Assembly: GCA_002269645.1 (NCBI GenBank)
Contig: NIVC01003205.1
Coordinates: forward strand, 1-64,000
DNA: 64,000 bases
Source of the DNA: Macrostomum lignano
Lineage: Eukaryota
Direction of reading: 5' to 3'
The notes beneath the pieces were generated by a model. That model did no database searches. It worked only from the letters and a program-made list of their open reading frames with translations, and was not told the DNA's origin. The first letter of the stretch is position 1. Every line of letters starts with the position of its first letter. A program made the position numbers and the translations under genes. This document shows positions 3,452 to 30,629 of this stretch, in pieces.

Positions 3452-6400
3452 ATGAAAGGTGCATTCTTTAACGACTCATCTGAAGGAGCCAACGCTACTG
3501 GCAATGGCACCGAGGACGATTGCGCTAAAAGCTTACGTCTCTTCACTGACAGCGAGCGCCGCTTCATTCTTGTCACTGACGTTGGTCTATCCTCCGCAAT
3601 CTGCTTGCTTGGCCTGCTTCTCAATTCACTGTCTATTGTCGTGCTCAAGCGAGATGTGCGCCGATCATCAATGAGTATTCTACTCCTGGCTCTTGCAATC
3701 TGTGAGCTTTTTATTTCCTTTTTGTTAGTACAAAAAATACAGGGTGCAAACGATGGGATTACCTTTTCGGGTCTAGAAAGGCACCTCCGCACAATCTTTT
3801 TCTTCCCAAGACTAACAGTATTTCAGGTTTCGACTTAGCGTCGTGGCTTGAACGTTCAGATTTTTTACTAACTCAGATTATTAACCCCAGAAATATGCCA
3901 CTCCCAAAAATCGCCACCTTTACATAAATTCCTCATTTCTCTAGAAAACAGAGCCTTTCGCGAATTTCAGGAGCTCTGAGCTCATTTCTAACTGACTGGT
4001 GGCTGCTTCCCCACCTAATCCCCTTCTATTTAGCTTTATGCTATTCGAGATACTATTTCTTTTTTTCACTAGATTTACCAGCATAGATATGCATCCTAAT
4101 TTGATGCATATTTTATCAACCCGAGAATGGACGTCGTGTTGCTTTTATCAAAATGCTTTTAGTGAACTTCTTGTAGTGCAAGATAAGAAATGTGACGTGA
4201 GGAACAATATGTATAAGGATTCTTTAGTGCAAGAAAGGATTTAGCGTGAAAGAAAATCTCCCGTTTACAGCAAAAGAAGCTCGATCGCCAGAGCCAAGGC
4301 TTAGTTAAACTGAGACGTTTCACTTCGGATTGACGCGTTTGCTCACGGCCCGATCTCAACTCTCGCACTCGTCTTTTGAAAAGTTGTTCATCTTGATTTT
4401 TGAGCTCGCTATCGGTACTTCTTTAAATCCCGATCGCCCCCTGGAGCGCGCACTGGCTGAGTGTTTCCAGCTCGTACCAAGAGTGAGTGGCCGACTGTGA
4501 GGCCAGTGGAGGAGGGGGGGGAGAAAAAAGTTAGCAAAGTGAGCCAGGGAGCAAGAAGCTTTTTCTCTTTTCGCTTTGCCTGATTGAGCATACAAACCCC
4601 CGGTTAATATCGCAACTTGCGTTCGGCTTGATTAGCCAGGAGATTCGCCGGCGAGAGCCCTTTTGCTCCTTTGCTCTGATGCAGCTTAATCATCCTTTCG
4701 TTTCTCTTGACTGGCATCCCGAGAGACTGTTTATCAGAAGAAAATTCCAACTTGAGTCATTTTTAGACCCCTGGGAGGGAACGCGCTTGCAGCTACGAGT
4801 AACTCACGAGCAACTCAAGGCTCCTGCTGAGTATGTACGAGCTATATTGTATATATTAACCAGTGATTAAGAACAGTTTGACTTTTCCCTGTATTTAAGC
4901 TTGGCACACTTTCGACTTTTGCCAGTCGAAATTTGCTTATAAAAAAATAATCTAGTCATTTATAACGAAATCGTTTAAACAAGAGTTCTTTTTGTTCGGT
5001 GCATACGCTCGTATGTATACGAGACCCAACAAAGTACTGACATTTTCAGTCCTGTTGTATAACTGATTTCAGGGGACGTTTCGATTTCGCTTTTCGTTAA
5101 TTTCAGCAGAAATTAATTAATTCTTCGATCTACCAATGCAATGCATGACGTTTGCAGTGGGCTGTGATTCCAAAGGGTCAGGGTCGCCACTGAGTTGTCA
5201 GCCGGCAACTTGGCTACTGTTGCCTAAGCACCATATTGAAGTCCATTTTGATCAATGCATGATTAGTTCTGATCAGCGTGTACGAGTACAGAAAACCAAT
5301 TCTAGCTGGGTTGGGCCTCTGGAACTCATCATCCGGTACAGAGTTTGATGCACCGGGATGCAAATGATACACTTGTTCAATACACTCTTTGTCCTAATTT
5401 TGTTCTTATTTATAAAAAATTGCAGCCTTCCTTCACTGTAGCTGAACTTGAAGCACACATGCGGGATACATTAAGTCTCTGTTTCTTCTCTGTAACAGCT
5501 GTAATAAAAAATCTTAAGTGGACCCAGGCGCTGTCAATCAACGAAGTTAGTAGTATGCTATGCTATTGGATATTCTATTGGATATGTGGGAAAAGTTTTA
5601 CTTCAAACTTTCCCTCTTCAAATTGTCCCCTGTTTTATTTCGAGCGTAATGATTAAAATACGCTTTTACCCGCGTAAGAACGGTCGTTAACGAAACACTG
5701 TACCTGAATCTGTCACAATTCAGTGGCAAGACATTCTACCGACACCCAACCAACTGATTTTCTTCATTGCAGTCGATTTGACCTTCATCTTACTGTCGGC
5801 GCCCTACTTCGTTGTGTACATGGGCCTGGGCTCCATCATCCAGGACTCAAATGGCGTAACTCTGCAGACATGGCTCCATGCCAGTCCCGGCATTCAGTTA
5901 ATCCTGCCAGCTGTTTATTATCTGGGCAATGTTGCACGAACAGGTCGGAACTGGATTGTCCTGCTGGTGGCACTGGATCGCTATATGGTTGTGCAGAACC
6001 CGTTCTTATCCACGCAGCGCAGCAATCCGAAGCGGTCAAGGCTTTACTGCATATGCGTCACGATTACGGCCATGTTTTACAACTTCCCGCTATTCCTGGA
6101 GTATAAATCCGATACGATAAAGTGCTTAAATATCAGCTTGATTTTGGCGCGCCCGAAAAGTCTGGGTAGTGCGTACATGCTTATATATAAGAAATTGCTG
6201 TACATTCTCCTGCTTACAGTTGGGCCTATGTTATGCCTGACGGCCCTTAACATTCTTTTGATTCGAAGTTTGCTGGTGGCCTCGCGAATCCGCGCCGCCA
6301 TTACTCGGGAGACCACGCGGCGCACTGAGGAGACCAAAATGCTGGTCGTCATTATTGCCGTGTTCGTGCTTACCGAGATACCTGGCACCATCTGGCACAT

Positions 6401-6881
6401 GCTCCTGGGCACAAAATTCGACAAGAGCGCATGGTTCAACTCATACTTGTACTCGGTTGGCTCGCTACTGACACTATTCAATTCCGCTATCAACTTTTTC
6501 ATTTACTGCGTTTGGAGTCGCAACTTTCGGCGCAACATGCTCTACGCCATGCGCCGGCGAAAGAAGCCACCGGCCCGGGTGATTCGCTTTGACTCCGACT
6601 CAGACCGCACCCGGCAGCTCTTGCTACAGCAGCAGCAGCAGCAGCTGCTGTGTGTTCGGCAGCCACCGGGTCCCGAGCAGCAGCGACATCAACAGCGCGC
6701 GGAGTCCCTTCCTATGCAAGTTATGCGCGCTTCACCGTTGAACAGTGCAGGCGGTGTCGCTGATGGCTGCGGTGTTGCTGGAGGCTCTGTTGATGAAAAC
6801 TGTGACAGTAGAAGTGACAGCAGTGACCGCAATCACAATTTGCAGCAGCAGCGCGTGCAAATCAATCCCCTGCGTGTGTAA
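3452..6881 (+). CDS. Class A (rhodopsin-like) neuropeptide GPCR, FMRFamide-receptor-like, 2 exons, ~452 aa
   Basis: Exon 1 3452-3701 (ATG, N-glycosylation sequons NDS/NAT/NGT, TM1 GLLLNSLSIVVL); phase-1 donor T|GTGAGC. Exon 2 5773-6881 follows ttgcag. Splicing restores the TM2 motif LALAIFD. TM3 ALDRY, TM7 NSAINFFIY, Q-rich C-tail. Confidence 0.9.
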
Positions 6882-8880: not shown

Positions 8881-9060
8881 ATGTCTAATCCATCCGTACC
8901 GGCTGCAGAAGAGCTTGCTGCCGATCAGATCTTTATCGATTTCGAAATCGATAGCGAGTGGAAAAAGTGCATCTACAGTGACTGCAGCAGAGCGGGACCA
9001 CAGCGGTCTCGAAATAACTCTTCCACCGCCCTACCGGCGAGCTCAAGTCCTGTTCCAGTG
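8881..9060 (+). CDS. Possible upstream coding exon of the SUMO-like/P450 gene (join unresolved)
   Basis: ATG at 8881, open frame MSNPSVPAAEELAADQIFIDFEIDSEWKKC..., donor GTG|GTGAGG at 9061. This donor is phase 0, whereas exon 9239 needs phase 1 in its protein-like frame. Confidence 0.3.
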
Positions 9061-9238
9061 GTGAGGCTTTTTAAAATCTCCTGAAAATACACAACTCACG
9101 CCCACTGTAGGCCTAAAATGAGACTGCGAATAGTAAAGCCATTTAAATATAGTGTTCAAGAATCAAGAACTACTCCTAACTACTACTAGAGCTTACTAGT
9201 CTCGCCCAGTGCCAGTGGTTTAGATTGCTTCTAACCAG

Positions 9239-12200
9239 AGAAATACCCCTTACGGCCACAGCCAGAGCCGGGCTTCCTGCACGGCTGCCAGAAGACTTTG
9301 CGACAGTCCTTTGAGGCCACGAGCCTTCGTCGGGATGCTCACAGTGTCACCCTCTGGCTGTGCGTCAGGAAGCACAATTACGAGAACTACTTGTGGCAGT
9401 TTGTGCGCCTTGGCCGGTTCCACGGGAGCGAAGCGTACTCAAACTTGTCGCTGTGGACTGTTCAGCTGCGAGTTCGAATGCACCGACGAGTTCCCTTTGG
9501 TTGTCTTCTGCGAGGTCTTTGCTGCCGCTTCGGGCTCGGCTCGACAAGTGAGGCTCTTAAACTGTGTTTGGACGGCTTCTACGGCATGCCTGGCTTTGGC
9601 GACATTTTTGGAAACCATAGTGACGGTAAGCTGTGAGCCATGGCATATTATTTAACTTACTTTAAATTATATTATACTGAAGTAGTATATTAAAGTTCAT
9701 TTTTTACTTCACTACTTGTCGCACAAATTGAGTCACATCACATATTTACACGTTAGTGAAGGGGAGGCAAAGACAAGACAAACCGAGTGTGGCGATGGCA
9801 AGGCAGCGAAAAGCCAGAGGATGCAACCCTCAGACGATCGTATTTATTTCATGACTTGTTAAAACGAATTAAACTGATTAAAAATTATAAATAGCGAGGA
9901 AAAAAAATTCAACCGCGAGCAACCCCGCGCAGCCACAAAGGTGGCGGCCTAAATAGGCACGCGCACGCACCAACGCACCCACCACCCCACCAGACAGCCA
10001 GCACCCAAACAGCCCCCCTTGCACTAACAGCGGTTAGCCCTCGCGGGCTCGCGCAAACCGATGCATTAGTGAAGGGGAGGCAAAGACAAGACAAACCGAG
10101 TGTGGCGATGGCGAGGCAGCGAAAAGCCAGAGGATGCAACCCCAAGGCCAAACAAACAAATGAATGAACGAAGGAGAGAATTTACGAAACGGCGGAAATA
10201 AGGCTGGGGATAAGAACGGAAATAAAACTTTGAACACAAGCAAAAGTTACTCAAAGGCAACTCTCGTTAAAAGCACCAGCAAAACGCGAACCAGCCCGCA
10301 CAGAATCAGCAGATGGAAGGTAGGCAGTCACAGCATCACTTCGCCAGTCACCGATGCACTTCACCTCCTGAACAGATAGTCCGAGACGGTAGGCCCAGGT
10401 GGCACCACCTCTGCGCAGGCTGTGCGCTGAGAAAGAACGAGCGTCCTGCTCAGCAGTTGCTAGGCAGCGCTTGAGGAACCTGTCGAATCTTGAGGCAGAC
10501 AGGACAACAGAGGATCCGCTCGCCAACTGGTAGGAGAACACAGGCTGCCTGCAGCCAAGCTTGCTGACACGGAGGTGACCCTCTAGCGCAGCCACTGGGC
10601 AAAGCGGATGTCCTTCTTTTAGCCTTGGAAGCAACACCCGGTGCAGCTTCGCGCCGAACTGATTCGTCTTGCCATAACTGACAGAGAGCACAACCCCCTT
10701 CGGGTGGCGTTGAAAGGCTGAGACGGAAATCGGTGAAGCGGACTGCTGACTGGGCAGGAGACTGGAGCGCCGAAACATCCCCCACCAAGCAATAAGCGTC
10801 ACAAGCCAGCAGACTCTGTCAAGCGAACTGCTCGAGTTAAGCCGGTTTTTCACAGACAGCAGCATCGCAGGCGAGATCGGCAGCTTCCGTCTTGGTCGCT
10901 GGCCCATCCTCCGTTTAGCGCCGCGAACGAGCAGTGAGACCAGGTGGTGTTTTGTTAGGTCCTCAGCACCACAGGCTTTGAACCAGCTGGACAGTGCACT
11001 GACATGGACACGCAGACTGTTGAACGATCTCAGGCGGCATTCGACCAGGTGAGCCAGGTAGTTGAGTAGCACCGACCGGTCGGATCGAGCCGGGTTGGTC
11101 CCGTTCTCGTTGCAGAAGCTGTGCCAGGACCGGACGGCCGATGAGATCGCCCTGCGTGACTGCGGTGCGTATGCTGCGGCGAGGAGGCTGGAGGCGGCGG
11201 CGCCGAGGGTCGGCGTTGCAGGGAGGCGGCCTGTGAAAATAAAAAACGGGAGGCAAAAACAGAAAACGCGTGATCCGAAAACTCCACAGGGCAAACTGGT
11301 ACAGACCCGTAAACACGGAAAATAAAATTAAGCAACTCATGACGCGAGTGCAGGCGGGACCCTGCATCAGCAAACAGCTGATAAGCACCAGGAACGTGAA
11401 AGACCTCAAATTCAACGTCAAAACGCAGACAGAGCAACGCCACAGACTGCAGCAACCACATCAGACGCGAGTCCTTGGAGACACCTCGCCTTAGAATCCA
11501 ACACGCCGTCTCATTGTCGCAGTACACAGCAAGCCGACAACCAGCCAAGGATTGGCCCCATCTCAAAACAGCCAGCAATATAACCACAGCCTCCTTGTAA
11601 TTGATGCAGTAATTCTGAAAAACACCATTTGCGTCGATCTGCCAGTCAATAAAGCACCAATCACGAATCCCATCACCGTCACGGAGCACCGCCGCGGCGC
11701 CTGAAGACGACGAGTCAGTCTCTATGGCAACACAAGCCCTCGGCGAAGTCCACAGGCCAACACCGATGCGATGCTGCAAAGCCAACCGCCACCAGGAGAG
11801 GTGGTGCACCACGGAGGGACTAACAAGAACCCTGTCATGAGGCCGATGCAGCTTGTTAACAATGTCGATAAGAGGTCGGAGGAAAACTCTCCCGTGCCGA
11901 ACAACTTGCGACGCCCAGTTTAACTTGCCGATCAACTTCTGCAAACACGACTTTGACAGCCTTTTCTTCGAAGAGCAGAGGGATAAAACATGCAATAAGT
12001 CTTGGACTTTTTCGGCAGGAAGAGACATCTGGCCTGCCACGCTATCAAATAAAATGCCCAGAAAGGTCATCCGCGTTGTCGGCGGAACACACTTGCTACG
12101 GTTAACGGTGAAGCCTAGCCGCTCGAGCAGATCGATGAGATGGTTGTAGAACTTCCAGCAGGACTCCAGATCTCCACAAAAGGCGAAGTCATCCATGTAG

Positions 12201-15200
12201 GCCTCCATAGCGTAGAAACCATGCTTCAACATCATAAAACGCACAGCTTGGCTCAGCTCGTAAAAGCAGAAGACGGAAGCCGAAGCACCAAACGGGAGCC
12301 GCGTGTCGTACAGGTACACTGGCTGGCCCTCGCCTTGGAGCTGAATCTTCATGCCTGTGACCCGGTGGTCATCAGGGTGCACACCACATGAACGATATGC
12401 TTGCGACAGATCCACTTTGCACATGTACGCGCCGCTGTACAGCTTCGAGGCAAAGTTGCTGGCCGAAGTAAAACGCAACTTCCGTTTCGACTCAAAGAAA
12501 TCATTCACAGAGGCGCCAGTTGGCAGGCTGCAGTCGTGAATAAGGCGGATGGAAGACGAATCCGCCTTAGGGATCGCACCAAGGGCACTAACGATGAGCG
12601 GCCGGTTGCCTGCCTGGCAGCGCCTGTAGCGGTCCTGCTTGAGCTCCTGGCGCACCTGGGCCTCAACAGCTTGCTGGTGAATGGTAGCTGATCTGTGATT
12701 TGCCATCTCAGTGTGGTTCTTACAATCCATCACTTTATTAGTAATTCGAAAGCCATTCTTCACACCATCGAGCACGAACCTGACACGGTCCTCCGGCATC
12801 TCGGTCCCAGCCAGCTCTTCCCGCCAAACCGCAAACACAAGGTCGCTCGACAACTCAGTTGAACTCGGGTCACATAGGGGGAGCTCCCCCGTGGGGGCAC
12901 AGGAGGGCGACCCGACGGCAGACATTGAGTCCTGTGCCCCCACCTCGCACGCTAGTTTTTTGAAAATTGGCCCGGGTCCCCATCAGCGTGGGCTCGGGCT
13001 TCAGAGTGCGGCTGTGAGCACCTGCGGCACTGATGGGCGAAGCGGCAGTGAGTTCTGTTGCAGCCGCTAAGACTGTTGAAGTCGAAACAGACAGGTGGCT
13101 GCGTTCGCTTTTTAGGCGCTGTTGCGTTTATCATTTTTGTTGGTGCCATCAAGTGTGTTGCCACCAGACCCAGGTCTGCGCTAACAGCGCTCCACCGCGT
13201 TCCATCATGCTGGAGAAGCCGACATTCGTCATCATATCTCATGACTTTAGTGCGATCGAAGCCTAAATCTAGCAGGTCACCAATTCTAGCGTTATGTCGG
13301 AGATGATCGATCAACTCGGATGAATCGATTCTGCCATCAACAATGCGCAGCAGTTTGCCATCACGCAGCATTTGCACCAGTAAGTTACAGCTACCGGAGA
13401 TGAAATCGCCAAACGACAGTGACTCGGGACTGACGTGTCTCAACCTCTCTGGCTTTGCCGCTCCCACAACAGACTGGCTTCCTTGTCTCCGCTTACGCTC
13501 ACTGATAAAATCAACGACTCTGTACACCGCCGGCGCCTGAGCATGCGAAGTTGCAGCCCCAGCCTGCCCGAGTATACACTCGCCAACCAAATCATGCCAC
13601 TCACCGGGAGTCTGATCACGTTCTCTCGCAGCCGCCGTGCCACTGTGACGCGCTTCAGCGAGCTCGGCTTCGAGCTGAGCCTCTCTTTTTTTCAGGTCCA
13701 GCAACCGAATGCGCAGTTCAGTCTCTCGCAGCTGATCCTCGAGACCGCCTCCCGTCGCCGCCCGACCCTCGGCCGAGGCGCCCACCGCCGGTAGCATCTC
13801 GTCCTCAGGTGGAGCCAGACTTAGCTCGGGTGCGCCCGCATTCGTCGGTGATGTCTTGTCATCTTGAGCACGACGAGATGAGCCTCTGTCCTGCTCCAAC
13901 GCCTGCCGCTCAAGCTCCTTGGCAATGCTGAGTTTTAGACGACTTGTTAGCTCTTGCTTATTGCCATTAGTAGGCAGGCCGCGCTCACTAAGGGCTTCTC
14001 GTAGCGCTTTGTTAGTTGCGGGCAGTACAAGGCTATCTGCCATGATTCAGCAAAAAAATTCAACCGCGAGCAACCCCGCGCAGCCACAAAGGTGGCGGCC
14101 TAAATAGGCACGCGCACGCACCAACGCACCCACCACCCCACCAGACAGCCAGCACCCAAACAGCCCCCCCTTGCACTAACAGCGGTTAGCCCTCGCGGGC
14201 TCGCGCAAACCGATGCATAACAATGAAGATTGCGGTGCGAAAACAAAAAAATAGAAGATATTTAAGATTGACAAGCAAAAAATAGCTAGGAAATTTTAAC
14301 ATACTACTTGGGACTCTGAGCACTTCAACGTTGAGAACTCGAGTGATGCGGAGCTGTGCTCAAATTCGTGTGCACCACGCCAGAAGAGGCACCCTCTGCG
14401 TTCAACCAGGCCCAAGGCGGAGACATTCTACTATTGTCTGTCTCGAAAACCATAGACACAATCTACTATTGTCTACCTCCAAAATCATAGACACAATTAA
14501 TCTACTATTGCCTCTCGAAAACCATAGACACAATCTACCATTGTCTGCCTCCAAAAACATAGACACAATCTACTATTGTCTCTCGAAAACCATAGACACA
14601 ATCTACCATTGTCTGCCTCCAAAACCACAGACACAATCTACCATTGTCTGCCTCCAAAACCACAGACACAATCTACCCTTGTCTGCCTCCAAAAACATAG
14701 ACACAATCTACTATTGTCTCTCGAAAACCATAGACACAATCTACAATTGTCTGACTCCAAAACCATAGACACAATCTACCATGCATTGATGCCTCCAAAA
14801 CCACAGACACAATTGATCATTGTCTGCCTCCAAAACCATAGACACAATCTACCATTGTCTACCTCCAAAACCATAGACACAATCTACCATTGTCTGCCTC
14901 CAAAACCATAGACACAATCTACCCTTGTCTGCCTCCAAAACCATAGACACAATCTACCCTTGTCTACCTCCAAAACCATAGACACAATCTACCCTTGTCT
15001 GCCTCCAAAACCATAGACACAATCTACCCGTGTCTGCTTCAAAAAACACAGACACAATTTACCATTTACCATACAACCTCCAGAACTATGGACCCAATCT
15101 ACCCATTTTTTAGACTGGTGTCCCCGAATCGAGAGTTAAAAAAGTGGATGACAGACAAACTTGTGCTAAACAGTCCTGTTTTTCACATTTAGATGCAGTT

Positions 15201-15637
15201 CCGTGGATGGAAATCTCAAATCAATCAACGGCGGACAGCCTCCAGCTACACGATGGAGACATTATATTTGTCAGCTATTCAAACGAAAAACTCGAAAGCC
15301 TGGCTAGAGCTCGGAAGCGTGCTCTCGTAAATCAGTCGGCATCCAGCAACGTTGCTCGGTCTTTTGCTCCCAGAAGCAGTACAACCACTGATACTGACTC
15401 TATTTCTTTAGCACCATTCGGAAAGCTCTCAAAGCCAATCTCGCAGAATGCCATGCCACTGGCAGATTCGGTCTCGCCGCCGCCACTGCACATGGCGACA
15501 AAGATGCCTACGCAGCCTCGGGCCCGGCGCGCATCAGTGCCCGCGGCTCACCCGGGCCAGCCAATGTGCATCTCTGCCGCCGCCACCTCGGCAGACATCC
15601 AGTTCTGTGAGGCGGTTATCAACACCAGCAAAACAGA
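9239..15637 (+). CDS. Two exons (9239-9625, 15193-15637) encoding an integral SUMO-like (Rad60-SLD type) ubiquitin-fold domain plus a Ser/Pro-rich linker
   Basis: Acceptor ccag|9239; donor G|GTAAGC at 9626 (phase 1); acceptor tttag|15193 (phase 1). The spliced peptide TVQLRVRMHRRVPFGCLLRGLCCRFGL...LKLCLDG...WMEISNQSTADSLQLHDGDIIFV follows the SUMO pattern [24 protein letters not shown]...[28 protein letters not shown]. No terminal di-Gly. Confidence 0.7.
9753..9829 (-). repeat. Split direct repeat B2 (3' terminus of the element)
   Basis: ttagtgaaggggaggcaaagacaagac...gatgcaaccc; matches 10066-10142 except ggcaagg/ggcgagg. Confidence 0.95.
9901..10142 (-). repeat. Internal B1-A2 repeat junction
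   Basis: A2 (9901-10066) abuts B1 (10066-10142) at gatgcaTtagtg, which is the predicted circle-junction sequence. Confidence 0.95.
10251..11294 (-). CDS. Tyrosine recombinase (DIRS/Ngaro ORF3)
   Basis: Catalytic motifs GMFRRSS (R), K in SYGKTN, HSLRRGGA (HxxR), GDWRS, AVTAY (Y). N-terminal SAM-like core-binding region. Overlaps the RT/RH ORF by 265 nt. No AUG at the ORF start. Confidence 0.95.
   Translation of the reverse strand: MPCGVFGSRVFCFCLPFFIFTGRLPATPTLGAAASSLLAAAYAPQSRRAISSAVRSWHSFCNENGTNPARSDRSVLLNYLAHLVECRLRSFNSLRVHVSALSSWFKACGAEDLTKHHLVSLLVRGAKRRMGQRPRRKLPISPAMLLSVKNRLNSSSSLDRVCWLVTLIAWWGMFRRSSLLPSQQSASPISVSAFQRHPKGVVLSVSYGKTNQFGAKLHRVLLPRLKEGHPLCPVAALEGHLRVSKLGCRQPVFSYQLASGSSVVLSASRFDRFLKRCLATAEQDARSFSAHSLRRGGATWAYRLGLSVQEVKCIGDWRSDAVTAYLPSADSVRAGSRFAGAFNESCL
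11030..12943 (-). CDS. Reverse transcriptase-RNase H (DIRS-type pol)
   Basis: RLIHDCS, KVDLSQAY, RLPFGASAS, YMDD, MTFLGI; RNase H motifs IETDSS, INYKEA, CDNETA. Confidence 0.95.
   Translation of the reverse strand: MGAQDSMSAVGSPSCAPTGELPLCDPSSTELSSDLVFAVWREELAGTEMPEDRVRFVLDGVKNGFRITNKVMDCKNHTEMANHRSATIHQQAVEAQVRQELKQDRYRRCQAGNRPLIVSALGAIPKADSSSIRLIHDCSLPTGASVNDFFESKRKLRFTSASNFASKLYSGAYMCKVDLSQAYRSCGVHPDDHRVTGMKIQLQGEGQPVYLYDTRLPFGASASVFCFYELSQAVRFMMLKHGFYAMEAYMDDFAFCGDLESCWKFYNHLIDLLERLGFTVNRSKCVPPTTRMTFLGILFDSVAGQMSLPAEKVQDLLHVLSLCSSKKRLSKSCLQKLIGKLNWASQVVRHGRVFLRPLIDIVNKLHRPHDRVLVSPSVVHHLSWWRLALQHRIGVGLWTSPRACVAIETDSSSSGAAAVLRDGDGIRDWCFIDWQIDANGVFQNYCINYKEAVVILLAVLRWGQSLAGCRLAVYCDNETACWILRRGVSKDSRLMWLLQSVALLCLRFDVEFEVFHVPGAYQLFADAGSRLHSRHELLNFIFRVYGSVPVCPVEFSDHAFSVFASRFLFSQAASLQRRPSAPPPPASSPQHTHRSHAGRSHRPSGPGTASATRTGPTRLDPTGRCYSTTWLTWSNAA
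12865..12961 (-). promoter_or_regulatory. Predicted -1 programmed ribosomal frameshift signal (A_AAA_AAC plus stem/pseudoknot)
   Basis: Heptamer at 12961-12955, in frame and directly before the gag UAG; pol is in the -1 frame and open through the site; perfect 14-bp inverted repeat at 12943-12930/12904-12891. Confidence 0.8.
12952..14043 (-). CDS. Gag-like ORF1 with N-terminal SAP domain, coiled coil and C-terminal Cys/His zinc-finger region
   Basis: ATNKALREALSERGLPTNGNKQELTSRL fits the SAP consensus; heptad-like LEDQLRETELRIRLLDLKKREAQLEAEL; CFDFNSLSGCNRTHCRFAHQCRRCSQPH. Confidence 0.9.
   Translation of the reverse strand: MADSLVLPATNKALREALSERGLPTNGNKQELTSRLKLSIAKELERQALEQDRGSSRRAQDDKTSPTNAGAPELSLAPPEDEMLPAVGASAEGRAATGGGLEDQLRETELRIRLLDLKKREAQLEAELAEARHSGTAAARERDQTPGEWHDLVGECILGQAGAATSHAQAPAVYRVVDFISERKRRQGSQSVVGAAKPERLRHVSPESLSFGDFISGSCNLLVQMLRDGKLLRIVDGRIDSSELIDHLRHNARIGDLLDLGFDRTKVMRYDDECRLLQHDGTRWSAVSADLGLVATHLMAPTKMINATAPKKRTQPPVCFDFNSLSGCNRTHCRFAHQCRRCSQPHSEARAHADGDPGQFSKN
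14052..14218 (-). repeat. Split direct repeat A1 (5' terminus of the element)
   Basis: Identical to 9901-10066 apart from one extra C in the C-run. Confidence 0.95.
14421..15104. repeat. Minisatellite, 35-bp unit (34-bp variants), ~19 copies, intronic
   Basis: tgtctgcctccaaaaccatagacacaatctaccat; period 35 read at 14821/14856. Confidence 0.95.
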
Positions 15638-15870
15638 GTTGGTGCATTTACGACTTGGCTTTTCTTTCTTTGTCTATGCGGCTTTGACTTATGACCCCAG
15701 GAAAAAGATTTTCATACACGATACCTGGTTGATTCTTCAACCAGGCTTTAGCCACTTCATTCAGTGTGTCGGCTCTCATATTTCGTATCAATCGGATCAG
15801 ATTATTGAGATTTTCATTTACCAATTTTTATGATATCTCGTAAACATCTAACTGATTAACAAACAAACAG

Positions 15871-18366
15871 GTTAGACCAAAGCCTGGCTGAGGATGGCAT
15901 CGAGACAGAAGTGTTCGCAAAAGATGGCTGGGGCCTTCATCCCGGTGCACTAAATAAGCTACATCAAGCGCATTCAGACATTGGAGACCTCGTGCGCGTG
16001 TCCTATCCCAGCTCCAAGCGTACAGAGAAACTTGGCTTAGTGCTCACACCGGAGCTGATGACTTGGATGTTGGACGCTGCCAAAGATCACCGCACTCCAC
16101 TCATCCATCCACTGCTCCCGAAAATACGAGCAAAGGTGTTCAGGTGCGACACAGCCTCAGACGTTGATGCCGCCGATGGACTCGGAGCTGGCATCGGAGC
16201 TGGTAGAGGAGCTCTTGAGGAGCTGCGAAATTTCGCCAGCAAAGTTGACAGCATGCTGCGGGTCCGCTGCGCCGGCTCAGGAAGCTTCTTGGATATCTGG
16301 TCGCCAGAGAGTGCAGCCTATTTTGTCGTGGATACTTTCTTTGGTTCCTCGATCTGCAGCATCTATGGAATCGAGCGGGACCATCGCTTCCACTCGTACG
16401 CTGTGGACGCAGCGTTGCATGAGCTTGAAAAAGGTTTTGTGACATTCTTCAGCGGCAATTCCGGTAGTCAAGCAAAATTGCGTAAAGCCGACCTGGACAA
16501 AGCCTGGGAGAATCTCTATCGCCTGCACCCGACAGCCCAGGAGCTGGCTGCCGCTGAGCCATGTCATCATTTCAAGGATTTACTCAACAGAGCCCTAAAG
16601 AGTGCGTGCAACTGCTTGTTGACTGTTTGATTTACCATATTGTCCTAAGCAAAGCGCTATGAGCATAGACACTGGCACAGGGAACAGAACAGCAGTGCCC
16701 GTCCTAAGCAAAACGCTATGAGCATAGACACTGGCACAGGGAACAGAACAGCAGTGCCTGTCCTAACCAAAACGCTATGAGCATAGAAACTGGCACAGGG
16801 AACAGAACAGCAGTGCCCGTCCTAAGCAAAACGCTATGAGCATAGACACTGGCACAGGGGAACAGAACAGCAGTGCCTGTCCTAACCGGACCAAAACACT
16901 ATGAGCATAGACACTGGCACAGGGAACAGAATGGCAGCGCCCACGCCTCTTGTGTTCCACTTTAAAGTTGATAACCAAAATGCTCACTTTTAGTGGAAAC
17001 CGGGTCTGACCAATACAAGTCGCACCTCCAATCTAAACTAGCAGCAATAGCTTTATTTGTTATCTCAGAAAATTAACTCATGTATTTTCCAGATCCAAAT
17101 AAGTCTTGGAGAGCCTTTGTCGGCTGCAGCATCAACTGTCTCTATAGCGACTACAGTGCTAAGAAAGCAGCTTTCTGGGCAATTCACTATCTCATATCTC
17201 ACACAGCCGTGCAGGAGAGCCTGTTAGCCGAGATCGATTCCATGGCGACCGCAGCAAGACCGCACGAATTTCGGCGATTGACGCTCAAGGAGCTTGATGA
17301 GATGCCATTTCTTGGTGGGTGGCACTTGCTTTGATTCTATTGAATATTTCGCGAAGCTCAGAGTCAACTTTTCATTTCAGAGGCCTTCGTAAAAGAAGTT
17401 TACCGGCTCACGTCGGGGCAGTTCGTTAGCTTCAGAGCTGGAACTGACTTGTTGTTGCAGACGCAGAAGAACTCTGAAGGCATCTGCTTGCACAGCGGTG
17501 AAGAGATCGGGGTGCTGCTTCGTTCATTGAACATGGACCCCAGTCTGTTCAAAAATCCAGAGGTGAGTTTTTGGCTGTTAGTACTGAAAGTGCAGGTGAA
17601 CATAAATCTATGTTGTTAGTTATTCTGGGTCTAAATTACTCAGTACTAGCTTAAGATTAGTGATTACTTTTGACATTCGCTTCGATATAGTTATAAGTAA
17701 AAAAGCTAGCGAACTATTTAGCAGCATTCAGATCTTAAAAATCTAAAGTCATCTCATTCTTTTGGAATAGAAGATCATAATCCGGTGCGGTTTGCGAAGC
17801 TTAAAATACGGCCTGCTAAGTTACTTATTCAGGGGAGGAGGGTTGGTGCCGTACGTAAGGGTGGTGGTCTACTTGTAGAGTCTCGAAGTCAAAAGCAGAA
17901 CTTTTGAGATGTCGTTCAGACCTTACAATGCACACTCCGATCTCCTTGGCGGCAGCAATGACGCGACACCTTGAATCCTACTTGAAGTATCGTAAAACGA
18001 ATTCAATCCTAACTAGGATGATTTCTAGTGTGCTTCAACAAAGTCTTTTATTGCCGTACAGAAATGCGAATTCTCGTCCATTGTTCCACACAGGCGTTCC
18101 AGCCGCAGCGCTTTCTGTTTGAGACCCAGCATGCGGAGCTCCTGGCCCTGCCGTTCGGCTGTCTGTGGCCTCGCCGGCGCCTCGGGCTGTTGAAGCTTAA
18201 GCTGTTCTTGGTGCTGCTGCTGAGCCGGTGCCGCATTCGGGCTGATGAAGGCACAGGCGCTCAGGTTGACGCCAGCGCCTTCTGCGTTGATATTCTGCCC
18301 TGGACGGAGGACGTTGTCTTTCAGTTCCAGGCCAGGGAGCAGATGAGAGCGACATTTACGCTTTAG
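15871..18366 (+). CDS. Cytochrome P450-fold domain, CYP7/CYP8-like, with degenerate heme motif; 4 exons, ~468 aa
   Basis: Exons 15871-16601, 17093-17314, 17381-17562, 18094-18366; all GT-AG junctions are phase-compatible. I/J-helix AAFWAIHYLISHTAVQESLLAEID (cf. CYP8A1 AAFWLLLFLLKNPEA), ExxR KEVYR, DPSLFKNPE, PQRF, PFG. No in-frame ATG or TM anchor at the start, so an upstream exon is required. Confidence 0.88.
16642..16935. repeat. Minisatellite, 59-bp unit, ~5 copies, in a P450 intron
   Basis: gtcctaagcaaaacgctatgagcatagacactggcacagggaacagaacagcagtgccc at 16642, 16701, 16760, 16819, 16879; alternating variants. Confidence 0.95.
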
Positions 18367-18740
18367 TGTGACGCGGCTCTTTCACTAGCCTCATGTGAAA
18401 ATCAATCAGAGCTGAGCCCAATATTTTAAACTAATTGCGCCAGGTATTGCATATCTCCCTCCCTTTGCTTCTGTTCCGCCATATTTTTACGATATAGGTG
18501 TTAATTATCTTGTTACTATTCATTTCCTGTTCTGATTTGTCATGTAAAAGAGTAAGCAGCAGAAGGGCTATAGCATTTTATATAGAATATTGTTTTTTAC
18601 TATAGACGTCTATATTAGTTCAGTAGTTAGAGCAATAAAAAGGAATTTCAGCTACGGCTCATGTTTTCGGTAAGTGAAACTGTACGTGTGAACTTAAAAT
18701 CTGTCACTTTTATATCTACTAAGTCGGAATTTGTGTAGAG

Positions 18741-18984
18741 GGCTACTCACACCTGTCTCCCAGACTCAGTTTACTGGGATTTGAGTAGATGGCTACTCAC
18801 ACCTGTCTCCCAGACTCAGTTTACTGGGATTTGAGTAGAAGGCTACTCACACCTGTCTCCCAGACTCAGTTTACTGGGATTTGAGTAGAAGGCTACTCAC
18901 ACCTGTCTCCCAGACTCAGTTTACTGGGATTTGAGTAGATGGCTACTCACACCTGTCTCCCAGACTCAGTTTACTGGGATTTGA
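18741..18984. repeat. Minisatellite, 50-bp hairpin-forming unit, ~4.9 copies
   Basis: ggctactcacacctgtctcccagactcagtttactgggatttgagtagat at 18741, 18791, 18841, 18891, 18941. Confidence 0.95.
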
Positions 18985-20115: not shown

Positions 20116-23100
20116 CTAGCAGTAGCTGCAGGACGCTGGCCGGTGACCGCTCTGGTGCCGCGAGTCCGCCTGGGCGATCGAGCCGCTGGTTTGGAAGTTT
20201 TGCTTTGCCAGAAGCTTCCTGAAGATCATTGAATTGATAAGTCAAGTTTCAATCCATCAGCGCCGCTATTTAGGTCTTGGGTATTAATTATTATTAATAA
20301 CGGGGTATGATAGGGAATAAAAAAGAAACGAAGTTATATTGTTTCTTCAGCACTTCTTCATGATTTCGTTTACAACAAAAGCCATCAGCCATAGCCTCCT
20401 CCCCTCAGCCCTGCGAAGCCATTCAAACCATAGTCAGAAGCTGACCTAACTAGCACCAATCAGATCCCATGAGGCAAGTTGAGCAGCTATGTAATTCAGT
20501 AGTGCACTAAAATTGAGTTGTCATCATTCTGATTGTGTATTTGCCATCATGCTGATCGTGTATTTGCCATCATGCTGATCGTGTATTTGCCATCATGCTG
20601 ATCGTGTATTTGCCATCAATCTGATTGTGTATTTGCCATCATGCTGATCGTGTATTTGCCATCATGCTGATTGTGTGTTTGCCATCATGCTGATCGTGTA
20701 TTTGCCATCATGCTGATCGTGTATTTGCCATCAATCTGATTGTGTATTTGCCATCATGCTGATCGTGTATTTGCCATCATGCTGATTGTGTGTTTGCCAT
20801 CATGCTGATCGTGTATTTGCCAGCATGCTGATCGCGTATTTGCCATCATGCTGATCGTGTATTTGCCATCAATCTGATTGTGTATTTGCCATCATGCTGA
20901 TCGTGTATTTGCCATCATGCTGATCGTGTATTTGCCATCATGCTGATCGTGTATTTGCCATCATGCTGATCGTGTATTTGCCATCAATCTGATTGTGTAT
21001 TTGCCATCATGCTGATCGTGTATTTGCCATCATGCTGATTGTGTGTTTGCCATCATGCTGATCGTGTATTTGCCAGCATGCTGATCGTGTATTTGCCATC
21101 ATGCTGATCGTGTATTTGCGATCATGCTGATTGTGTATTTGGCATCATTCTGATCGTGTATTTGCCATCATGCTGATCGTGTATTTGCCATCAATTTTGC
21201 CATCATGCCATCATGCTGATAGTGTATTTGCCATCATGCTGATCGTGTATTTGCGATCATGCTGATTGTGTATTTGGCATCATGCTGATCGTGTATTTGC
21301 CATCATTCTGATCGTGTATTTGCCATCAATTTTGCCATCATGCCATCATGCTGATTGTGTATTTGCCATCATGCTAATCGTGTATTTGCGATCATGCTGA
21401 TTGTGTATTTGGCATCATGCTGATCGTGTATTTGCCATCATGCTGATCGTGTATTTGCCATCATTCTGATCGTGTATTTGCCATCATTCTGATTGTGTAT
21501 TTGCCATCATGCTGATCGTGTATTTGCCATCATTCTGATCGTGTATTTGCCATCATTCTGATCGTGTATTTGCCATCAATTTTGCCATCATGCCATCATG
21601 CTGATTGTGTATTTGCCATCATGCTAATCGTGTATTTGCGATCATGCTGATTGTGTATTTGCCATCATGCTGATCGTGTATTTGCCATCATGCTGATCGT
21701 GTATTTGCCATCATTCTGATCGTGTATTTGCCATCATTCTGATTGTGTATTTGCCATCATGCTGATCGTGTATTTGCCAGCATGCTGATCGTGTATTTGC
21801 CATCATTCTGATCGTGTATTTGCCATCAATTTTGCCATCATGCCATCATGCTGATTGTGTATTTGCCATCATGCTAATCGTGTATTTGCGATCATGCTGA
21901 TTGTGTATTTGCCATCATGCTGATCGTGTATTTGCCATCATTCTGATCGTGTATTTGCCATCATTCTGATCGTGTATTTGCCATGAATCTGATAGTGTAT
22001 TTGCCATCATGCTGATCGTGTATTTGCCATGAATCTGATCGTGTATTTGCCATCAATTTTGCCATCATGCTGATCGTGCATTTGCCATCATGCTGATCGT
22101 GTATTTGCCATCAATCTGATCGTGTATTTGCCATCATGCTGATCGTGTATTTGCCATCATGCTGATTGTGTATTTGCCATCATGCTGATCGTGTATTTGC
22201 CATCATGCTGATTGTGTATTTGCCATCATGCTGATCGTGTATTTGCCAGCATGCTGATCGTGTATTTGCCATCATGCTGATCGTGTATTTGCCATCATGC
22301 TGATCGTGCATTTGCCATCATGCTGATCGTGTATTTGCCATCATGCTGATCGTGTATTTGCCATCATTCTGATTGTGTATTTGCCATCATGCTGACCGTG
22401 TGATGACTGAAAACACCAACTGAAAACTGATGCGTCGCACGATATTTCAAGCTGATAAATACAAATTTACGTACTTTGTCCGGATCGCTGCAGCTTGGGC
22501 GAGATGGACCAGTGAAGGCTTGAATTTCATAGTTAACGTGGAAATCGTTATAGCACGCTTTTCAAGAGCATCTAGGCAGAAGAAGAAAGGCAACTTACCG
22601 TCCTATTGTTTGGAAGCAGAGGTCAACATTGTGCCCCGTCCTGGCGCTCGTCTCCATAAAACACATTATGTCGCACTCCTGTGGGCAGCATTGAAATCAA
22701 AATGACCCCCTTGATTTTCTGGATTGAAAACTCAGAATTAACCTGTGTGACCCACCTGAGCTAGCCGCTGCCCTTCGTGAGCGCTAACCTGCCTTTCAGA
22801 GTCCAGATCAGCCTTGTTGGCTACCAAAATGATGAATACATCCTCAGAGCCGTATTCGCGAATTTCCGTGAGCCAGGAGCGGACACTGCTGAATGTCTGG
22901 CGGCTGGTCAGATCGTAGAATAGCAGAATAGCTGTGCTCGGCAAAAAGTCGGATTGAGAGCTTCCAGCTCACTGAGACTGTTTTCATTGATGCAGTCACT
23001 CAACAGACCTATGCTTTCGCTTCTGCACTTGTCTAAATTAATTCTTCCCATCTCAGCCTCTTGCCTACCTGCCGGTTCTTCTTTATACTCGAATTTAAGC

Positions 23101-27207: not shown

Positions 27208-30200
27208 CTAATACTGAGAGTCAGAGAGGCGACTGGCGGCATAGTCAGTGCCGCGCTTCCTCAACTCGCCCTCAGCTGAAAGCATCAGGAAAATGACAGC
27301 AAATTTAGTTACATAATATACACAATACACCAGTCACTGAAGCAAACTTGCTACTTTTATTGCTTTAGTTGACGCGAAACTAAATAAATTGTAAGTAATT
27401 TTCTTCAGCTTCTCGAACTCACTTTCGAAAGCTCTATGTCAAATACAATCAATTTCAAACTAATTTTGCATTTGCAAGTTCTAGTGGGAAAGCCTTGTGC
27501 TGGGAAATGTTCTGAAATACGAAACTGTTAAAGCAAATAATCCAATTTATCCAGGTAGATTAGTAGAAACGCACTGTCTAGCTAGGCCAGAGAAACTTCA
27601 AAGAGGACCAGCAGAGAGAGTACAAGGACAAAGTAGAAAGGTCAGGAAGAAACACACAAGACTACGGGAGGAAGGAAACAACAAATGGCACACACAGAAA
27701 GTACGGTTGCGAATGCAGCACGAACAGGAGGGTGATAGAAAACCTTGCCATTTGCTTAACTTTTGGGCCTTAAACATGGGCAAAGCTTTTCTGCACTGCC
27801 TACTTCAACTTCAAGAACGAAGGAATAAATGTCAAGGGTTAAGCTTCGCGAGGATGACTGGAAAATAATTGAATAATGACAGTACCTTTGAAGCAATGCT
27901 AGACACTAAAGTAGATCAAGTAACAGACGAAAGAAAACTACGTTTACGAACAGCTAACACTTACGACCCATAGATGAATAACATATTCGCAATGACATAC
28001 TCGTTGTTAACGTTATAGTGACAAGAATCGATATTGCAAACAACTCACTAGTGACACTGGCTACTCTGGGGCGACTCTTGTGACTTTTTAACGACTCGAA
28101 CGATTGTAATGCGACGGAGGCGACTGTTGAGTCACGAGCGCATCACGTGAGTTGTATAATTTTAAGAGTCACGAAAGTCGCCCAAGAGTCGTTGTGTTAG
28201 CGTTTAACCTTACTACAAACAAGTAGACTAAATAGACTTTTATAATATGAAATGCGATTCTAATGCATACTCGTAAAGTGACGCAGATGCACTTTAGACG
28301 CAAACCCAGTGACTCTTCACTCTACAGCGACTCCAGCACGCAAACAGAGTTATTTGCGTCGCCCCAAAGTCACTAGAGTCGCGCCCAAAGTAATTTGCGT
28401 CACCCCAGAGTCACTAGGGTCGCGAACAGAGTTATTGCGTCACCCCAGAGTCACTAGGGTCGCGAACAGAGTTATTGCGTCACCCCAGAGTCACTAGGGT
28501 CGCGAACAGAGTTATTGCGTCACCCCAGAGTCACTAGGGTCGCGAACAGAGTTATTGCGTCACCCCAGAGTCACTAGGGTCGCGAACAGAGTTATTGCGT
28601 CACCCCAGAGTCACTAGAGTCGCGAACAGAGTTATTGCGTCACCCCAGAGTCACTAGGGTCGCGAACAGAGTTATTGCGTCACCCCAGAGTCACTAGGGT
28701 CGCGAACAGAGTTATTGCGTCACCCCAGAGTCACTAGGGTCGCGAACAGAGTTATTGCGTCACCCCAGAGTCACTAGGGTCGCGAACAGAGTTATTGCGT
28801 CACCCCAGAGTCACTAGAGTCGCGAACAGAGTTATTGCGTCACCCCAGAGTCACTAGAGTCGCGAACAGAGTTATTGCGTCACCCCAGAGTCACTAGAGT
28901 CGCGAACAGAGTTATTGCGTCACCCCAGAGTCACTAGGGTCGCGAACAGAGTTATTGCGTCACCCCAGAGTCACTAGGGTCGCGAACAGAGTTATTGCGT
29001 CACCCCAGAGTCACTAGGGTCGCGAACAGAGTTATTGCGTCACCCCAGAGTCACTAGGGTCGCGAACAGAGTTATTGCGTCACCCCAGAGTCACTAGGGT
29101 CGCGAACAGAGTTATTGCGTCACCCCAGAGTCACTAGAGTCGCGAACAGAGTTATTGCGTCACCCCAGAGTCACTAGGGTCGCGAACAGAGTTATTGCGT
29201 CACCCCAGAGTCACTAGAGTCGCGCCCAGTCATTTTCGTCACTTGAATCGTAGACAGTAAAACTCCTCAAATTGACTCTTTAGTGAATTGTACCATGACA
29301 TCTTGTCGTTTTAGAGTCGTCTAGAGTCACTTATTTCTTTTTTTACCTATGTTACCTGCAACGAATCTGAAACAACGCAAATGACTCTGGGACGCTTATT
29401 GACCTAGGTACTGTTTCGATTGGGATAAGCCTATGGGTATTTTGTTGTACTTTTTATTTGCAACTCAGTTTGTCATAAATTACCATAGACTAATTTCCTT
29501 TTACAGTTCTTTCTCGCAGTTAAGTTTCTCGCCCCAAGCCCTCTCGTCTTTAACTCATAAAATATATTGCAATTCAAATCTAACTTAAGTTGTAGTTTCA
29601 CTACAAATTGGTCCGGTGAGGCGGCGAAAGATATTACTCGCATACTCAATACTCACAGAAGACAAATCCAATGACGGACAGTGCAAGCAACAATTCCGCT
29701 CCTACACCACCTACAACCACTGAGTTGATCTGCCTAGTATCGCTGAAGCACAACGACCGGAGTCGTTCTCAGCTGCACCAAATATTCGATCGTATTCTCT
29801 GGACAAAGACGTCGTCGTTTGGAGTGAGACGTCAACGCCGTATCCTCGCCCGATCATTCCGCCGTCCCTCCGCGACGCCGTGATTGCCTCCTTCCATCGA
29901 CTTGGTCATTTCGGCTACCGTAAAACAGCAAAACTCATCACAGAACGTTACTTTTGGCCCGGAATGCGCAAGTCCATCAAGACCTACTGCTGGAACTGCC
30001 AGGACTGCCAACGGAGTAAAGTCACTCGCCACACTGTCTCCCCGCAACAGGCCTTCGCATTACCATCAAATCGCTTTGAGGCGGTACACATCGATATTGT
30101 GGGACCACTTCCACCCCCAGCCCTCTCGCCCCAAGCCCTCTCGTCTTTAACTCATAAAATATATTGCAATTCAAATCTAAGTTAAGTTGTAGTTTCACTA

Positions 30201-30629
30201 CAAGCCAAATACAATAGTTATGGCACAACAATGGCTTACCCTCATTGACTAACTGTCCAGCGGCATCCTGCATTTTGTCAATAGTGTCATCAATGCGCTT
30301 CTGGTGCTTGATCACGAATGGGCGGATAACACGGTTGTACAGAAGCACAGACCCATTGGCCTGGATGGGTACCATCAGATATATTAGGAATATGCACTTG
30401 ATGAAGGCATACAGTGGAATCCACCACAGGAAAATGTCAGTAAAGGTCTCGAGCAGACTGAAGCCAGCATATACAACCCAGTAGGTGAGCCACTTTGTAT
30501 CGTCGTCTTTGGCACGAGTCTCGATAGCTTTAACGGAGGCATAGGCTGGATAGAGGAAGCCAATGAAATTAGCTAGGAACTGGGAGCCATAGCCAAACAT
30601 AAGATAGATGGCTATGAAGACCAGGATAC
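27208..30629 (-). CDS. REEP5: REEP5/DP1/Yop1 (TB2/DP1, HVA22 family) ER-shaping protein, 3' exons only
   Basis: Exon 30629-30240 (GILVFIAIYLMFGYGSQFLANFIGFLYPAYASVKAIE...DDTKWLTYWVVY...), bounded by tttag| and G|GTAAGC. Probable last exon 27275-27208 (AEGELRKRG...Y*) is phase compatible. 5' exon not found. Confidence 0.88.
28345..29229. repeat. Minisatellite, 40-bp unit, ~21 copies, in a REEP5 intron
   Basis: gcgtcaccccagagtcactagggtcgcgaacagagttatt, period 40, with a g/a variant (ctagggt/ctagagt). Confidence 0.97.
29527..30202 (+). mobile_element. Internally deleted Ty3/Gypsy LTR retrotransposon remnant
   Basis: 79-bp direct repeats at 29527-29605 and 30124-30202 (1 mismatch) ending in ...cactaCA. 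PBS TGGTCCGGTGAGGCGG at 29609. Gag-like start at 29671. Integrase HHCC (HRLGHFG...YFWPGM...CWNCQDC) and core start HIDIVGPLP. Confidence 0.85.

Follow-up and report, generated by a model that had tools for sequence, protein, structure and literature searches.

The DNA analyzed here is a stretch of 64,000 nucleotides from the flatworm Macrostomum lignano (contig NIVC01003205.1, positions 1 to 64,000 of the forward strand), to which we refer as the window. The locus under study is covered by the GenBank models BOX15_Mlig033662 g1-g3 and is a gene of seven exons on the plus strand (8881-18366), whose predicted protein of 798 amino acids (aa) has no predicted membrane anchor and comprises, from the N-terminus, a SUMO-like domain, about 100 residues of low-complexity linker and a clan-7 (CYP7/8-like) cytochrome P450 fold in which tryptophan stands in the place of the axial heme cysteine. 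GT-AG borders are found at every junction, and the 798 codons contain no internal stop. The exons in the window were mapped from the exact spliced model of L001, a second genomic copy of the gene, and by tblastn of the deposited 798-aa model P0001. The product is identical to the g1 protein (P0174), and it shares 99-100% protein identity with the hypothetical models of M. lignano. The exons, and the heme loop in the last of them, are as follows:

8881-9060, plus strand: exon 1, with the ATG at 8881; aa 1-60, a low-complexity N-terminus, followed by a GT donor
9262-9625, plus strand: exon 2; aa 61-181, with the first half of the SUMO-like beta-grasp domain from about 9319
15193-15637, plus strand: exon 3; aa 182-330, the rest of the SUMO-like domain to about 15344 and then a Ser/Pro/Ala-rich linker
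15871-16601, plus strand: exon 4; aa 331-574, the N-terminal half of the P450 fold, with an AlphaFold2 (AF2) predicted local distance difference test score (pLDDT) of 60-96 from about aa 353
17093-17314, plus strand: exon 5; aa 574-648, with the I-helix at 17122-17178, GCSINCLYSDYSAKKAAFW
17381-17562, plus strand: exon 6; aa 648-708, with the K-helix ExxR (KEVYR) at 17395-17406 and LLRSLNMDPS in the YPPAIHKDPE position
18094-18366, plus strand: exon 7; aa 709-798 and the stop codon, with PxRF (PQRF, 18103-18114), the Cys-loop, the L-helix and the C-terminal sheets
18151-18210, plus strand: heme loop and start of the L-helix, PFGCLWPRRRLGLLKLKLFL; PFG begins at 18151, Cys731 is TGT at 18160-18162 and Trp733 is TGG at 18166-18168

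Exons 4-7 join in frame to give 468 stop-free codons with AG/GT borders throughout, and the translation of exon 7 (18094-18366, plus strand) reads AFQPQRFLFETQHAELLALPFGCLWPRRRLGLLKLKLFLVLLL...TFTL and a stop, equally given as AFQPQRFLFETQHAELLALPFGCLWPRRRLGLLKLKLFLVLLLSRCRIRADEG...TFTL and a stop. A preliminary description of this DNA had reported 468 intact codons together with intact ExxR and PxRF motifs and splice junctions; all of these were confirmed, but the 468 codons form only the C-terminal part of the 798-codon open reading frame (ORF), and the heme loop had been started two codons too early, at 18145. Two alternative models, P0002 and P0003 (UniProt A0A1I8J0L4 and A0A1I8FUR6), lack either part of exon 3 or exon 5 together with the last portion of exon 4. 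UniProt names them "Protein kinase domain-containing" (P0002) and "FERM domain-containing" (P0003); Pfam shows p450 only, and these names look spurious.

The P450 domain is very divergent, since both the coverage by Pfam is partial and the matches to solved P450s are weak. The Pfam model PF00067 (p450) scores 67.4 bits against a cutoff of 22.8 and covers the C-terminal 160 residues only (E 1.3e-18), and single-sequence matches to solved P450s reach an E-value no better than 3e-8. A profile built from the window protein and four relatives, however, matches CYP7A1 (3SN5), CYP8B1 and prostacyclin synthase (PGIS) from end to end, with E-values of 2.5e-66 (CYP7A1) to 3.5e-50, and the assignment to CYP7/8 made in the preliminary description is therefore right. 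In the same alignment, CYP7A1 and CYP8B1 have three more residues in the Cys-loop, where the profile shows a gap. The structure that AF2 predicts from an alignment of the family agrees with this assignment: the P450 fold is confident for aa 353-798 approximately (pLDDT mostly 70-97), and the top Foldseek matches of the model are CYP8B1, CYP7A1 and PGIS, with a TM-score normalized to the target of 0.70-0.75. In the model, the L-helix begins with residue 736; Trp733 lies three residues before it, where the axial ligand is usually located.

An exhaustive HMMER scan of 1.84 billion representatives returned 466 matches at E ≤ 1e-3, far fewer than we would expect for a typical P450. The nearest matches are two canonical P450s of M. 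lignano itself, P0004 (A0A1I8ITJ4, E 2e-30) and P0010, together with a "P450 7A1-like" protein of Littorina (P0012) and P0029, which comes from a Logan assembly and whose contig is apparently intron-free. When P0012 was used as query, 162 relatives were retrieved from gastropods, bivalves, cephalopods, annelids, nemerteans, Lingula, a bryozoan and M. lignano, annotated as 7A1-like, 8B1-like or prostacyclin synthase-like. The relatives considered here are P0004, P0010, P0012, P0029 and P0176-P0291. Judged from its alignments, the P450 part of the window protein is a descendant of this conserved spiralian "CYP7A1-like" family, of which M. lignano retains the Cys-bearing members P0004 and P0010. 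We also observed that the Cys-loop of the family is three residues shorter than that of CYP7A1 and CYP8B1 (Cys at F+4), that this loop is conserved in molluscs, annelids, nemerteans, a brachiopod, a bryozoan and a flatworm, and that the family also has a near-invariant I-helix; we found no description of these traits.

P450s are defined by their axial cysteine. In the profile alignment with the nearest relatives, which contains the three-residue Cys-loop gap, the axial-Cys column is occupied by Trp733 (TGG), at the position of Cys444 of CYP7A1. Among all the family sequences retrieved, a hidden Markov model alignment gave 66 that cover the loop; 65 have the cysteine, and the sole exception is the protein studied here, with its tryptophan. 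None of the 66 has an insertion between FG and the Cys position. The loop of 24 aligned family members follows the pattern FG[SAT][LI]CPG[KRQ][KR], which has the same length as FGCLWPRRR in the window protein; against the short-loop pattern FG[SAT][LI]CPG, with Cys at F+4, the length is identical and Trp replaces Cys. Two residues before the ligand position the window protein has Cys731, at a site occupied by Ser, Ala, Thr or Val in the family. At the L-helix position the family has Gln and the window protein has Lys.

These comparisons bear on four features of the loop that had been reported in the preliminary description. The loss of the axial heme cysteine in an intact frame holds, with TGG at 18166 falling in the Cys column in both the profile and the family alignments, and so does the cysteine at F+2 (TGT, 18160-18162). 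The loop is indeed three residues shorter than that of CYP7A1 and CYP8B1, but this cannot be read as degeneration of the heme loop: because all Cys-bearing loop-covering members of the family (65/65) share the loop length, we rejected the possibility that the shortness reflects decay. Likewise, the Lys in place of the L-helix Glu is present, but it is not a specific degeneration, given that the family itself has Gln. Thus, on the alignments, the short loop and the absent L-helix Glu are ancestral traits of the family that are compatible with a conserved cysteine, and the only change within the loop that is specific to the protein studied here is Cys to Trp, together with the new cysteine two residues upstream.

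Outside the loop the divergence is extensive. The I-helix, GCSINCLYSDYSAKKAAFW, contrasts with the family consensus GHNLVYLHVNYNTFRxxFW and its near-invariant motif GHNLVYLHVNYNT; LYSDYSA stands in place of the family LHVNYNT, so that neither an AGx(D/E)T-like pair nor the Asn-Thr of the CYP7/8 type is present, as had been described. Three family motifs are degraded, namely that of the I-helix (here GCSINCLYSDYSA), YPPAIHKDPE (here LLRSLNMDPS) and YGHEILPP (here FCVDILPW), and the P450 part has neither a membrane anchor nor an EPPLVPG hinge. ExxR (KEVYR), PxRF (PQRF), core Gly and Phe residues and the C-terminal ILP motif are kept. Across 23 Cys-bearing members, 107 alignment columns show conservation of 90% or more; of these, the window protein keeps 37 (35%), compared with 74-100% in the other members and 57% in a CYP7-like outgroup; that is, 65% of the family-conserved positions, more than 60 besides the cysteine, have been lost. 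Pairwise identity to its relatives is 20-26%, whereas the relatives share 29-42% among themselves. In a neighbor-joining tree that includes the CYP7-like outgroup, the protein lies inside the family on the longest branch, at its base and near the M. lignano paralogs. The outgroup, P0009, served for this purpose only; it has 923 aa in two nearly identical tandem CYP7-like P450 units with a canonical loop, and is probably a mis-merged tandem duplicate.

The N-terminal part of the protein resembles a different set of proteins. Residues 55-247 match small proteins of 218-372 aa, all named ones being from M. lignano, where the number of 90% clusters is seven or more; the set also contains one sequence from the Logan assembly of a public run. 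Relatives in this family are P0005-P0008, P0013, P0115, P0130 and P0152, and the domain lies at 9319-9625 and 15193-15344 of the window (aa 80-232 approximately). No Pfam match was found for the N-terminal 349 aa or for the paralogs. A profile nevertheless matches SUMO2/3 and Smt3 weakly and consistently, with E-values of 7e-6 for a tandem chain and about 0.02 for single chains. Using an alignment of the small-protein family, AF2 models aa 80-230 with a pLDDT of 70-94, and the top 50 Foldseek matches of this domain are almost all SUMO (SUMO1/2/3) or Smt3 (TM-score normalized to the target 0.7-0.83, E 6e-4 and above). The domain bears long insertions and the conserved motif CLDGFYG...DIFG...PWMEIS..ST..SL.L..GD.IF. 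It does not have a C-terminal Gly-Gly for conjugation; it is internal and is followed by ...IIFVSYSNEKLESLARARK. A linker of about 100 residues, rich in Ser, Pro and Ala and predicted with low confidence, joins it to the P450 part. The N-terminal domain is thus an internal SUMO-like beta-grasp, and the small-protein family to which it belongs seems to be expanded in M. lignano.

The Mlig_3_7 assembly holds three copies of the gene, namely that in the window (g1), L002 (g2) and L001 (g3), and in all of them the 798-codon ORF is open and the TGG codon is present. Window and L001 differ at 19 of 2397 coding bases, with a synonymous divergence (dS) of 0.020, a non-synonymous divergence (dN) of 0.0044 and a ratio of the two (omega) of 0.22 (p = 0.0013). 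In the P450 part these two copies show seven synonymous and three non-synonymous differences (dS 0.022, dN 0.0028, omega 0.13, binomial p = 0.002), and over the three copies there are nine synonymous and three non-synonymous events in this part (p = 0.0002-0.006, depending on the neutral fraction assumed). The introns differ by 2.25% (29/1287), a value similar to that at synonymous sites (p = 0.86), and about five-fold higher than that at non-synonymous sites (p = 5e-6); at the intron rate about 24 non-synonymous changes would be expected in the P450 part between window and L001, and three are seen. The agreement between synonymous and intron divergence argues against homogenization that is specific to the exons. 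Since every copy has the tryptophan, the substitution predates the split of the copies, and the Trp form has since been under constraint. The three intact copies, the dN/dS of 0.13 and a non-synonymous divergence below that of the introns therefore indicate retention rather than decay.

The annotation also bears on expression. The BOX15 gene models were built by RNA-seq-guided transcript assembly, with mRNA boundaries set by trans-splicing and poly(A) evidence and ORFs called with TransDecoder (PMC5730564). Because the GenBank models are transcript-derived, transcription of the gene and use of its splice junctions are implied. Taken with the conservation of the reading frame, this locus appears to be a real gene, and a decaying pseudogene is unlikely.

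The window contains several other elements, including a retrotransposon within the gene:

10251-14043, minus strand: DIRS-like retrotransposon in intron 2 and not part of the protein; by Pfam, its three open ORFs are a SAP-domain gag-like ORF (12952-14043), reverse transcriptase and RNase H (11030-12943) and a tyrosine recombinase (10251-11294)
5778-6881, plus strand: ORF for a rhodopsin-type G protein-coupled receptor (GPCR)
30022-30699, minus strand: TB2/DP1/HVA22 family protein
44679-45983, plus strand: Cys-loop ligand-gated ion channel, with the ligand-binding domain and the transmembrane region in one ORF

Intron 2 measures 5567 bp in the window, 600 bp in L001 and 846 bp in L002, and the DIRS-like element is absent from the other two copies; its presence in the window copy alone suggests that the insertion is recent and that the element may still be active. 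Minisatellites are found in intron 2 (14423-15066, 35 bp x 18) and intron 4 (16642-16942, 59 bp x 5), and intron lengths vary among the copies, those of intron 4 being 491, 257 and 614 bp. Further tandem arrays lie at 20518-22401 (23-bp x ~80), 28339-29224 (40-bp x 22), 55382-55754 (TGAG x 93) and, in the 3' flank of the gene, 18729-18984 (50-bp x 5); of these, the arrays of 23-bp and 50-bp units recur downstream of the L001 copy. Immediately downstream of the fusion gene, both L001 and L002 have an Arf/Ras/Roc GTPase gene, which is encoded on the minus strand. No Rfam RNA family was found in the window.

A P450 that lacks the thiolate cannot generate Compound I. Because the thiolate has been lost here, established P450 chemistry makes P450-type oxygen activation impossible, and the sequence thus points to a loss of catalysis in the P450 domain. 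A tryptophan cannot ligate the iron, and it is fairly probable that the indole bulk of Trp733 at the ligand position would exclude or displace the heme. We therefore favor, on balance and with some reserve, the view that the gene encodes a selectively maintained pseudoenzyme derived from a P450, in which the SUMO-like domain and the P450 fold are joined in one predicted 798-aa protein and the P450 domain is most likely a "dead enzyme" kept for a non-catalytic job. The preliminary description had likewise proposed a retained non-catalytic role, with lipid/sterol sensing or scaffolding as possible examples, rather than decay, and this is borne out as far as the retention (dN/dS 0.13, three intact copies) and the loss of the axial cysteine and the I-helix motif are concerned.

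The following scheme would account for these features. A lineage-specific duplicate of a spiralian CYP7-like gene would have lost its membrane anchor and gained 5' exons from the SUMO-like family; it would then have been released from the catalytic constraints of its ancestor and have come under a different one. Because purifying selection has persisted since the change from Cys to Trp, the P450 fold would most likely be reused as a binding module for a protein partner or a small lipid-like ligand. Speculatively, the SUMO-like domain would tether or target this P450-like module. From its ancestry, the protein may be supposed to bind a ligand or to scaffold other proteins, in a way that would be coupled to SUMO-like interactions.

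It should be noted that several points weigh against this view. Firstly, the selection test draws on few substitutions, with 12 events in the P450 part, and reaches back no further than the separation of the copies (dS of about 0.02). Secondly, the exhaustive protein search found no ortholog outside M. lignano, so that the dN/dS comparison, which the preliminary description had put forward for orthologs, covers copies within this species (0.13 in the P450 part, window against L001), and the evidence of conservation is confined to it. Thirdly, no literature was found under the locus name Mlig033662, and no expression data for the gene were found. Fourthly, the AF2 model was derived from an alignment of canonical family members, which pulls it toward their fold. 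Finally, the new Cys731 lies near the lost ligand and natural P450s that are not ligated by Cys exist in bacteria (PMC11703216), so that some heme chemistry is conceivable.

The last point leads to the alternative that survives best, although we consider it improbable, namely that the protein is a non-canonical heme protein. The iron would then be ligated by Cys731 after a two-residue shift in register or by water or another residue, or would have no proximal ligand, and the protein would act in redox, peroxidase-like, isomerase or gas/ligand-sensing reactions. On the one hand, Cys731 is present at a site where the family has Ser, Ala, Thr or Val, the structural core and the cavity-forming fold appear to be kept in the model, and the clan-7 relatives include an isomerase, prostacyclin synthase. 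Bacterial homologues moreover exist with Ser, Sec, Glu, Arg or hydrophobic axial residues, one of them being a proven Ser-ligated heme protein (PMC11703216). On the other hand, the tryptophan lies exactly in the ligand column, and the start of the L-helix is unchanged in the AF2 model; the loop is already three residues shorter than that of CYP7A1, which would leave little slack for a shift in register; and the I-helix Asn-Thr, GHN and YPPAIH motifs, which are near-invariant in the family and probably line the active site, have been lost.

A smaller chance attaches to the possibility that the fusion is an artefact of annotation. In that case, the SUMO-like exons 1-3 and the P450-like exons 4-7 would be two neighboring genes of one transcription unit that are separated by spliced-leader trans-splicing. 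About 7% of the assembled M. lignano transcripts are indeed polycistronic precursors (PMC5730564), and, because the exon 3 frame continues beyond the donor before ending at a stop at 15831-15833, a stand-alone SUMO-like protein of the size of its paralogs (218-372 aa) is conceivable. However, the first in-frame Met of the P450-like part lies about 60 residues into exon 4, so that a separate P450 product would lack a nearby start codon. Furthermore, the splice between exons 3 and 4 is in phase and is used in all five deposited models, which stem from two annotation efforts, and the annotation pipeline cut transcription units wherever there was evidence of trans-splicing (PMC5730564). An artefactual fusion would in any case leave the verdict on the P450 domain unchanged.

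Slighter still are the prospects of a non-functional relic, that is, a duplicated Cys-less P450 that is drifting, whose frame is open by chance or youth and which is transcribed as noise. The extreme divergence (20-26% identity, 35% of the conserved positions kept) would fit such a relic, as would the lack of a detected ortholog in other species and the retrotransposon and variable minisatellites in the introns. A drifting sequence is, however, difficult to reconcile with a 798-codon ORF that is open in three copies differing by about 2% at neutral sites, with omega values of 0.13-0.22, with three non-synonymous changes where about 24 are expected, and with synonymous divergence equal to that of the introns; in addition, the change from Cys to Trp predates the split of the copies, and selection hence acted on the Trp form. 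Lastly, a sequencing or assembly error (the true codon being TGC or TGT) can be ruled out for practical purposes: although TGG is one third-position change away from a Cys codon, the W-for-C loop is carried by three separate genomic copies (TGG at three independent Mlig_3_7 loci) and by five deposited protein models, including the UniProt-only P0002 and P0003, and more than 60 other conserved positions are altered as well.

We now return to the pseudoenzyme that we favor and compare it with known systems. Its nearest homologues are the members of the spiralian CYP7A1-like family, for example P0004 or Littorina saxatilis XP_070192908, with which it aligns over its full length and shares the short loop, the ILP motif and ExxR. 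These members differ in having the cysteine, a membrane anchor with EPPLVPG, and the motifs GHNLVYLHVNYNT, YPPAIHKDPE and YGHEILPP, whereas the window protein has the tryptophan and the N-terminal SUMO-like fusion. The vertebrate clan-7 enzymes CYP7A1 (3SN5), CYP8B1 (7LYX) and prostacyclin synthase (CYP8A1, 2IAG) are the best profile and structural matches and have the same overall fold; compared with them, the window protein has a Cys-loop that is three residues shorter (with respect to CYP7A1) and lacks the thiolate, the I-helix Asn-Thr and an evident anchor.

For the function, the best analogy is provided by the bacterial P450-derived glycosyltransferase activating factors (PDGAFs), such as EryCII, DesVIII and AknT, which have a P450 fold without the axial cysteine and heme and act as a non-catalytic partner or chaperone (PMC3391682; PMC11703216). 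PDGAFs differ from the flatworm P450-like domain in that they are bacterial and of independent origin, are encoded beside their glycosyltransferase partner and do not carry a SUMO-like fusion. No glycosyltransferase was seen among the neighbors examined, those identified being the GPCR, the Arf/Ras-type GTPase, the TB2/DP1/HVA22 protein and the Cys-loop channel. A RefSeq-wide survey has shown that more than 99.5% of P450 homologues have the cysteine, and that the remainder includes 20 ncCYP families, all bacterial, with Glu, Arg, Ser, Sec, Ala, Phe, Leu or Ile/Val as the axial residue; some ncCYPs still bind heme, as does the Ser-ligated P450-G9 (PMC11703216). The window protein resembles these families, which make up less than 0.5% of the homologues surveyed, in its non-Cys axial residue, but Trp is not among the residues listed and all reported families are bacterial. 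Thus, according to this survey, P450 folds without the cysteine have previously been catalogued only in bacteria, whereas the one described here is from an animal and is fused to a SUMO-like domain. In the case of the latter domain, the RENi proteins (Rad60/Esc2/NIP45) likewise have an internal SUMO-like beta-grasp without a conjugatable C-terminus; the similarity to their SUMO-like domains is weak, however, and the flatworm domain has long insertions, matches no Pfam model and belongs to a family found only in Macrostomum and in one Logan transcript.

No precedent for a P450 pseudoenzyme in animals was found in our literature search. We tentatively raise the possibility, which we rate at somewhat less than even, that the protein is the first animal P450 fold made non-catalytic: an anchor-less, probably heme-free, SUMO-coupled ligand sensor or protein-binding scaffold with Trp for Cys, kept under purifying selection, and as such a eukaryotic counterpart of the PDGAFs. 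The sensor or scaffold would be provided by its surface or by its cavity, which stems from a P450 lineage of the sterol/oxylipin type. If our view of this protein is true, it would mean that the P450 fold can take on non-oxidative roles in metazoans as well. M. lignano is a tractable organism in this respect, as RNA interference and transgenesis are available and a canonical paralog allows side-by-side comparison. The short-loop spiralian CYP7-like family, moreover, matters for motif-based annotation, since scans for FxxGxxxCxG would miss or mis-score such genes.

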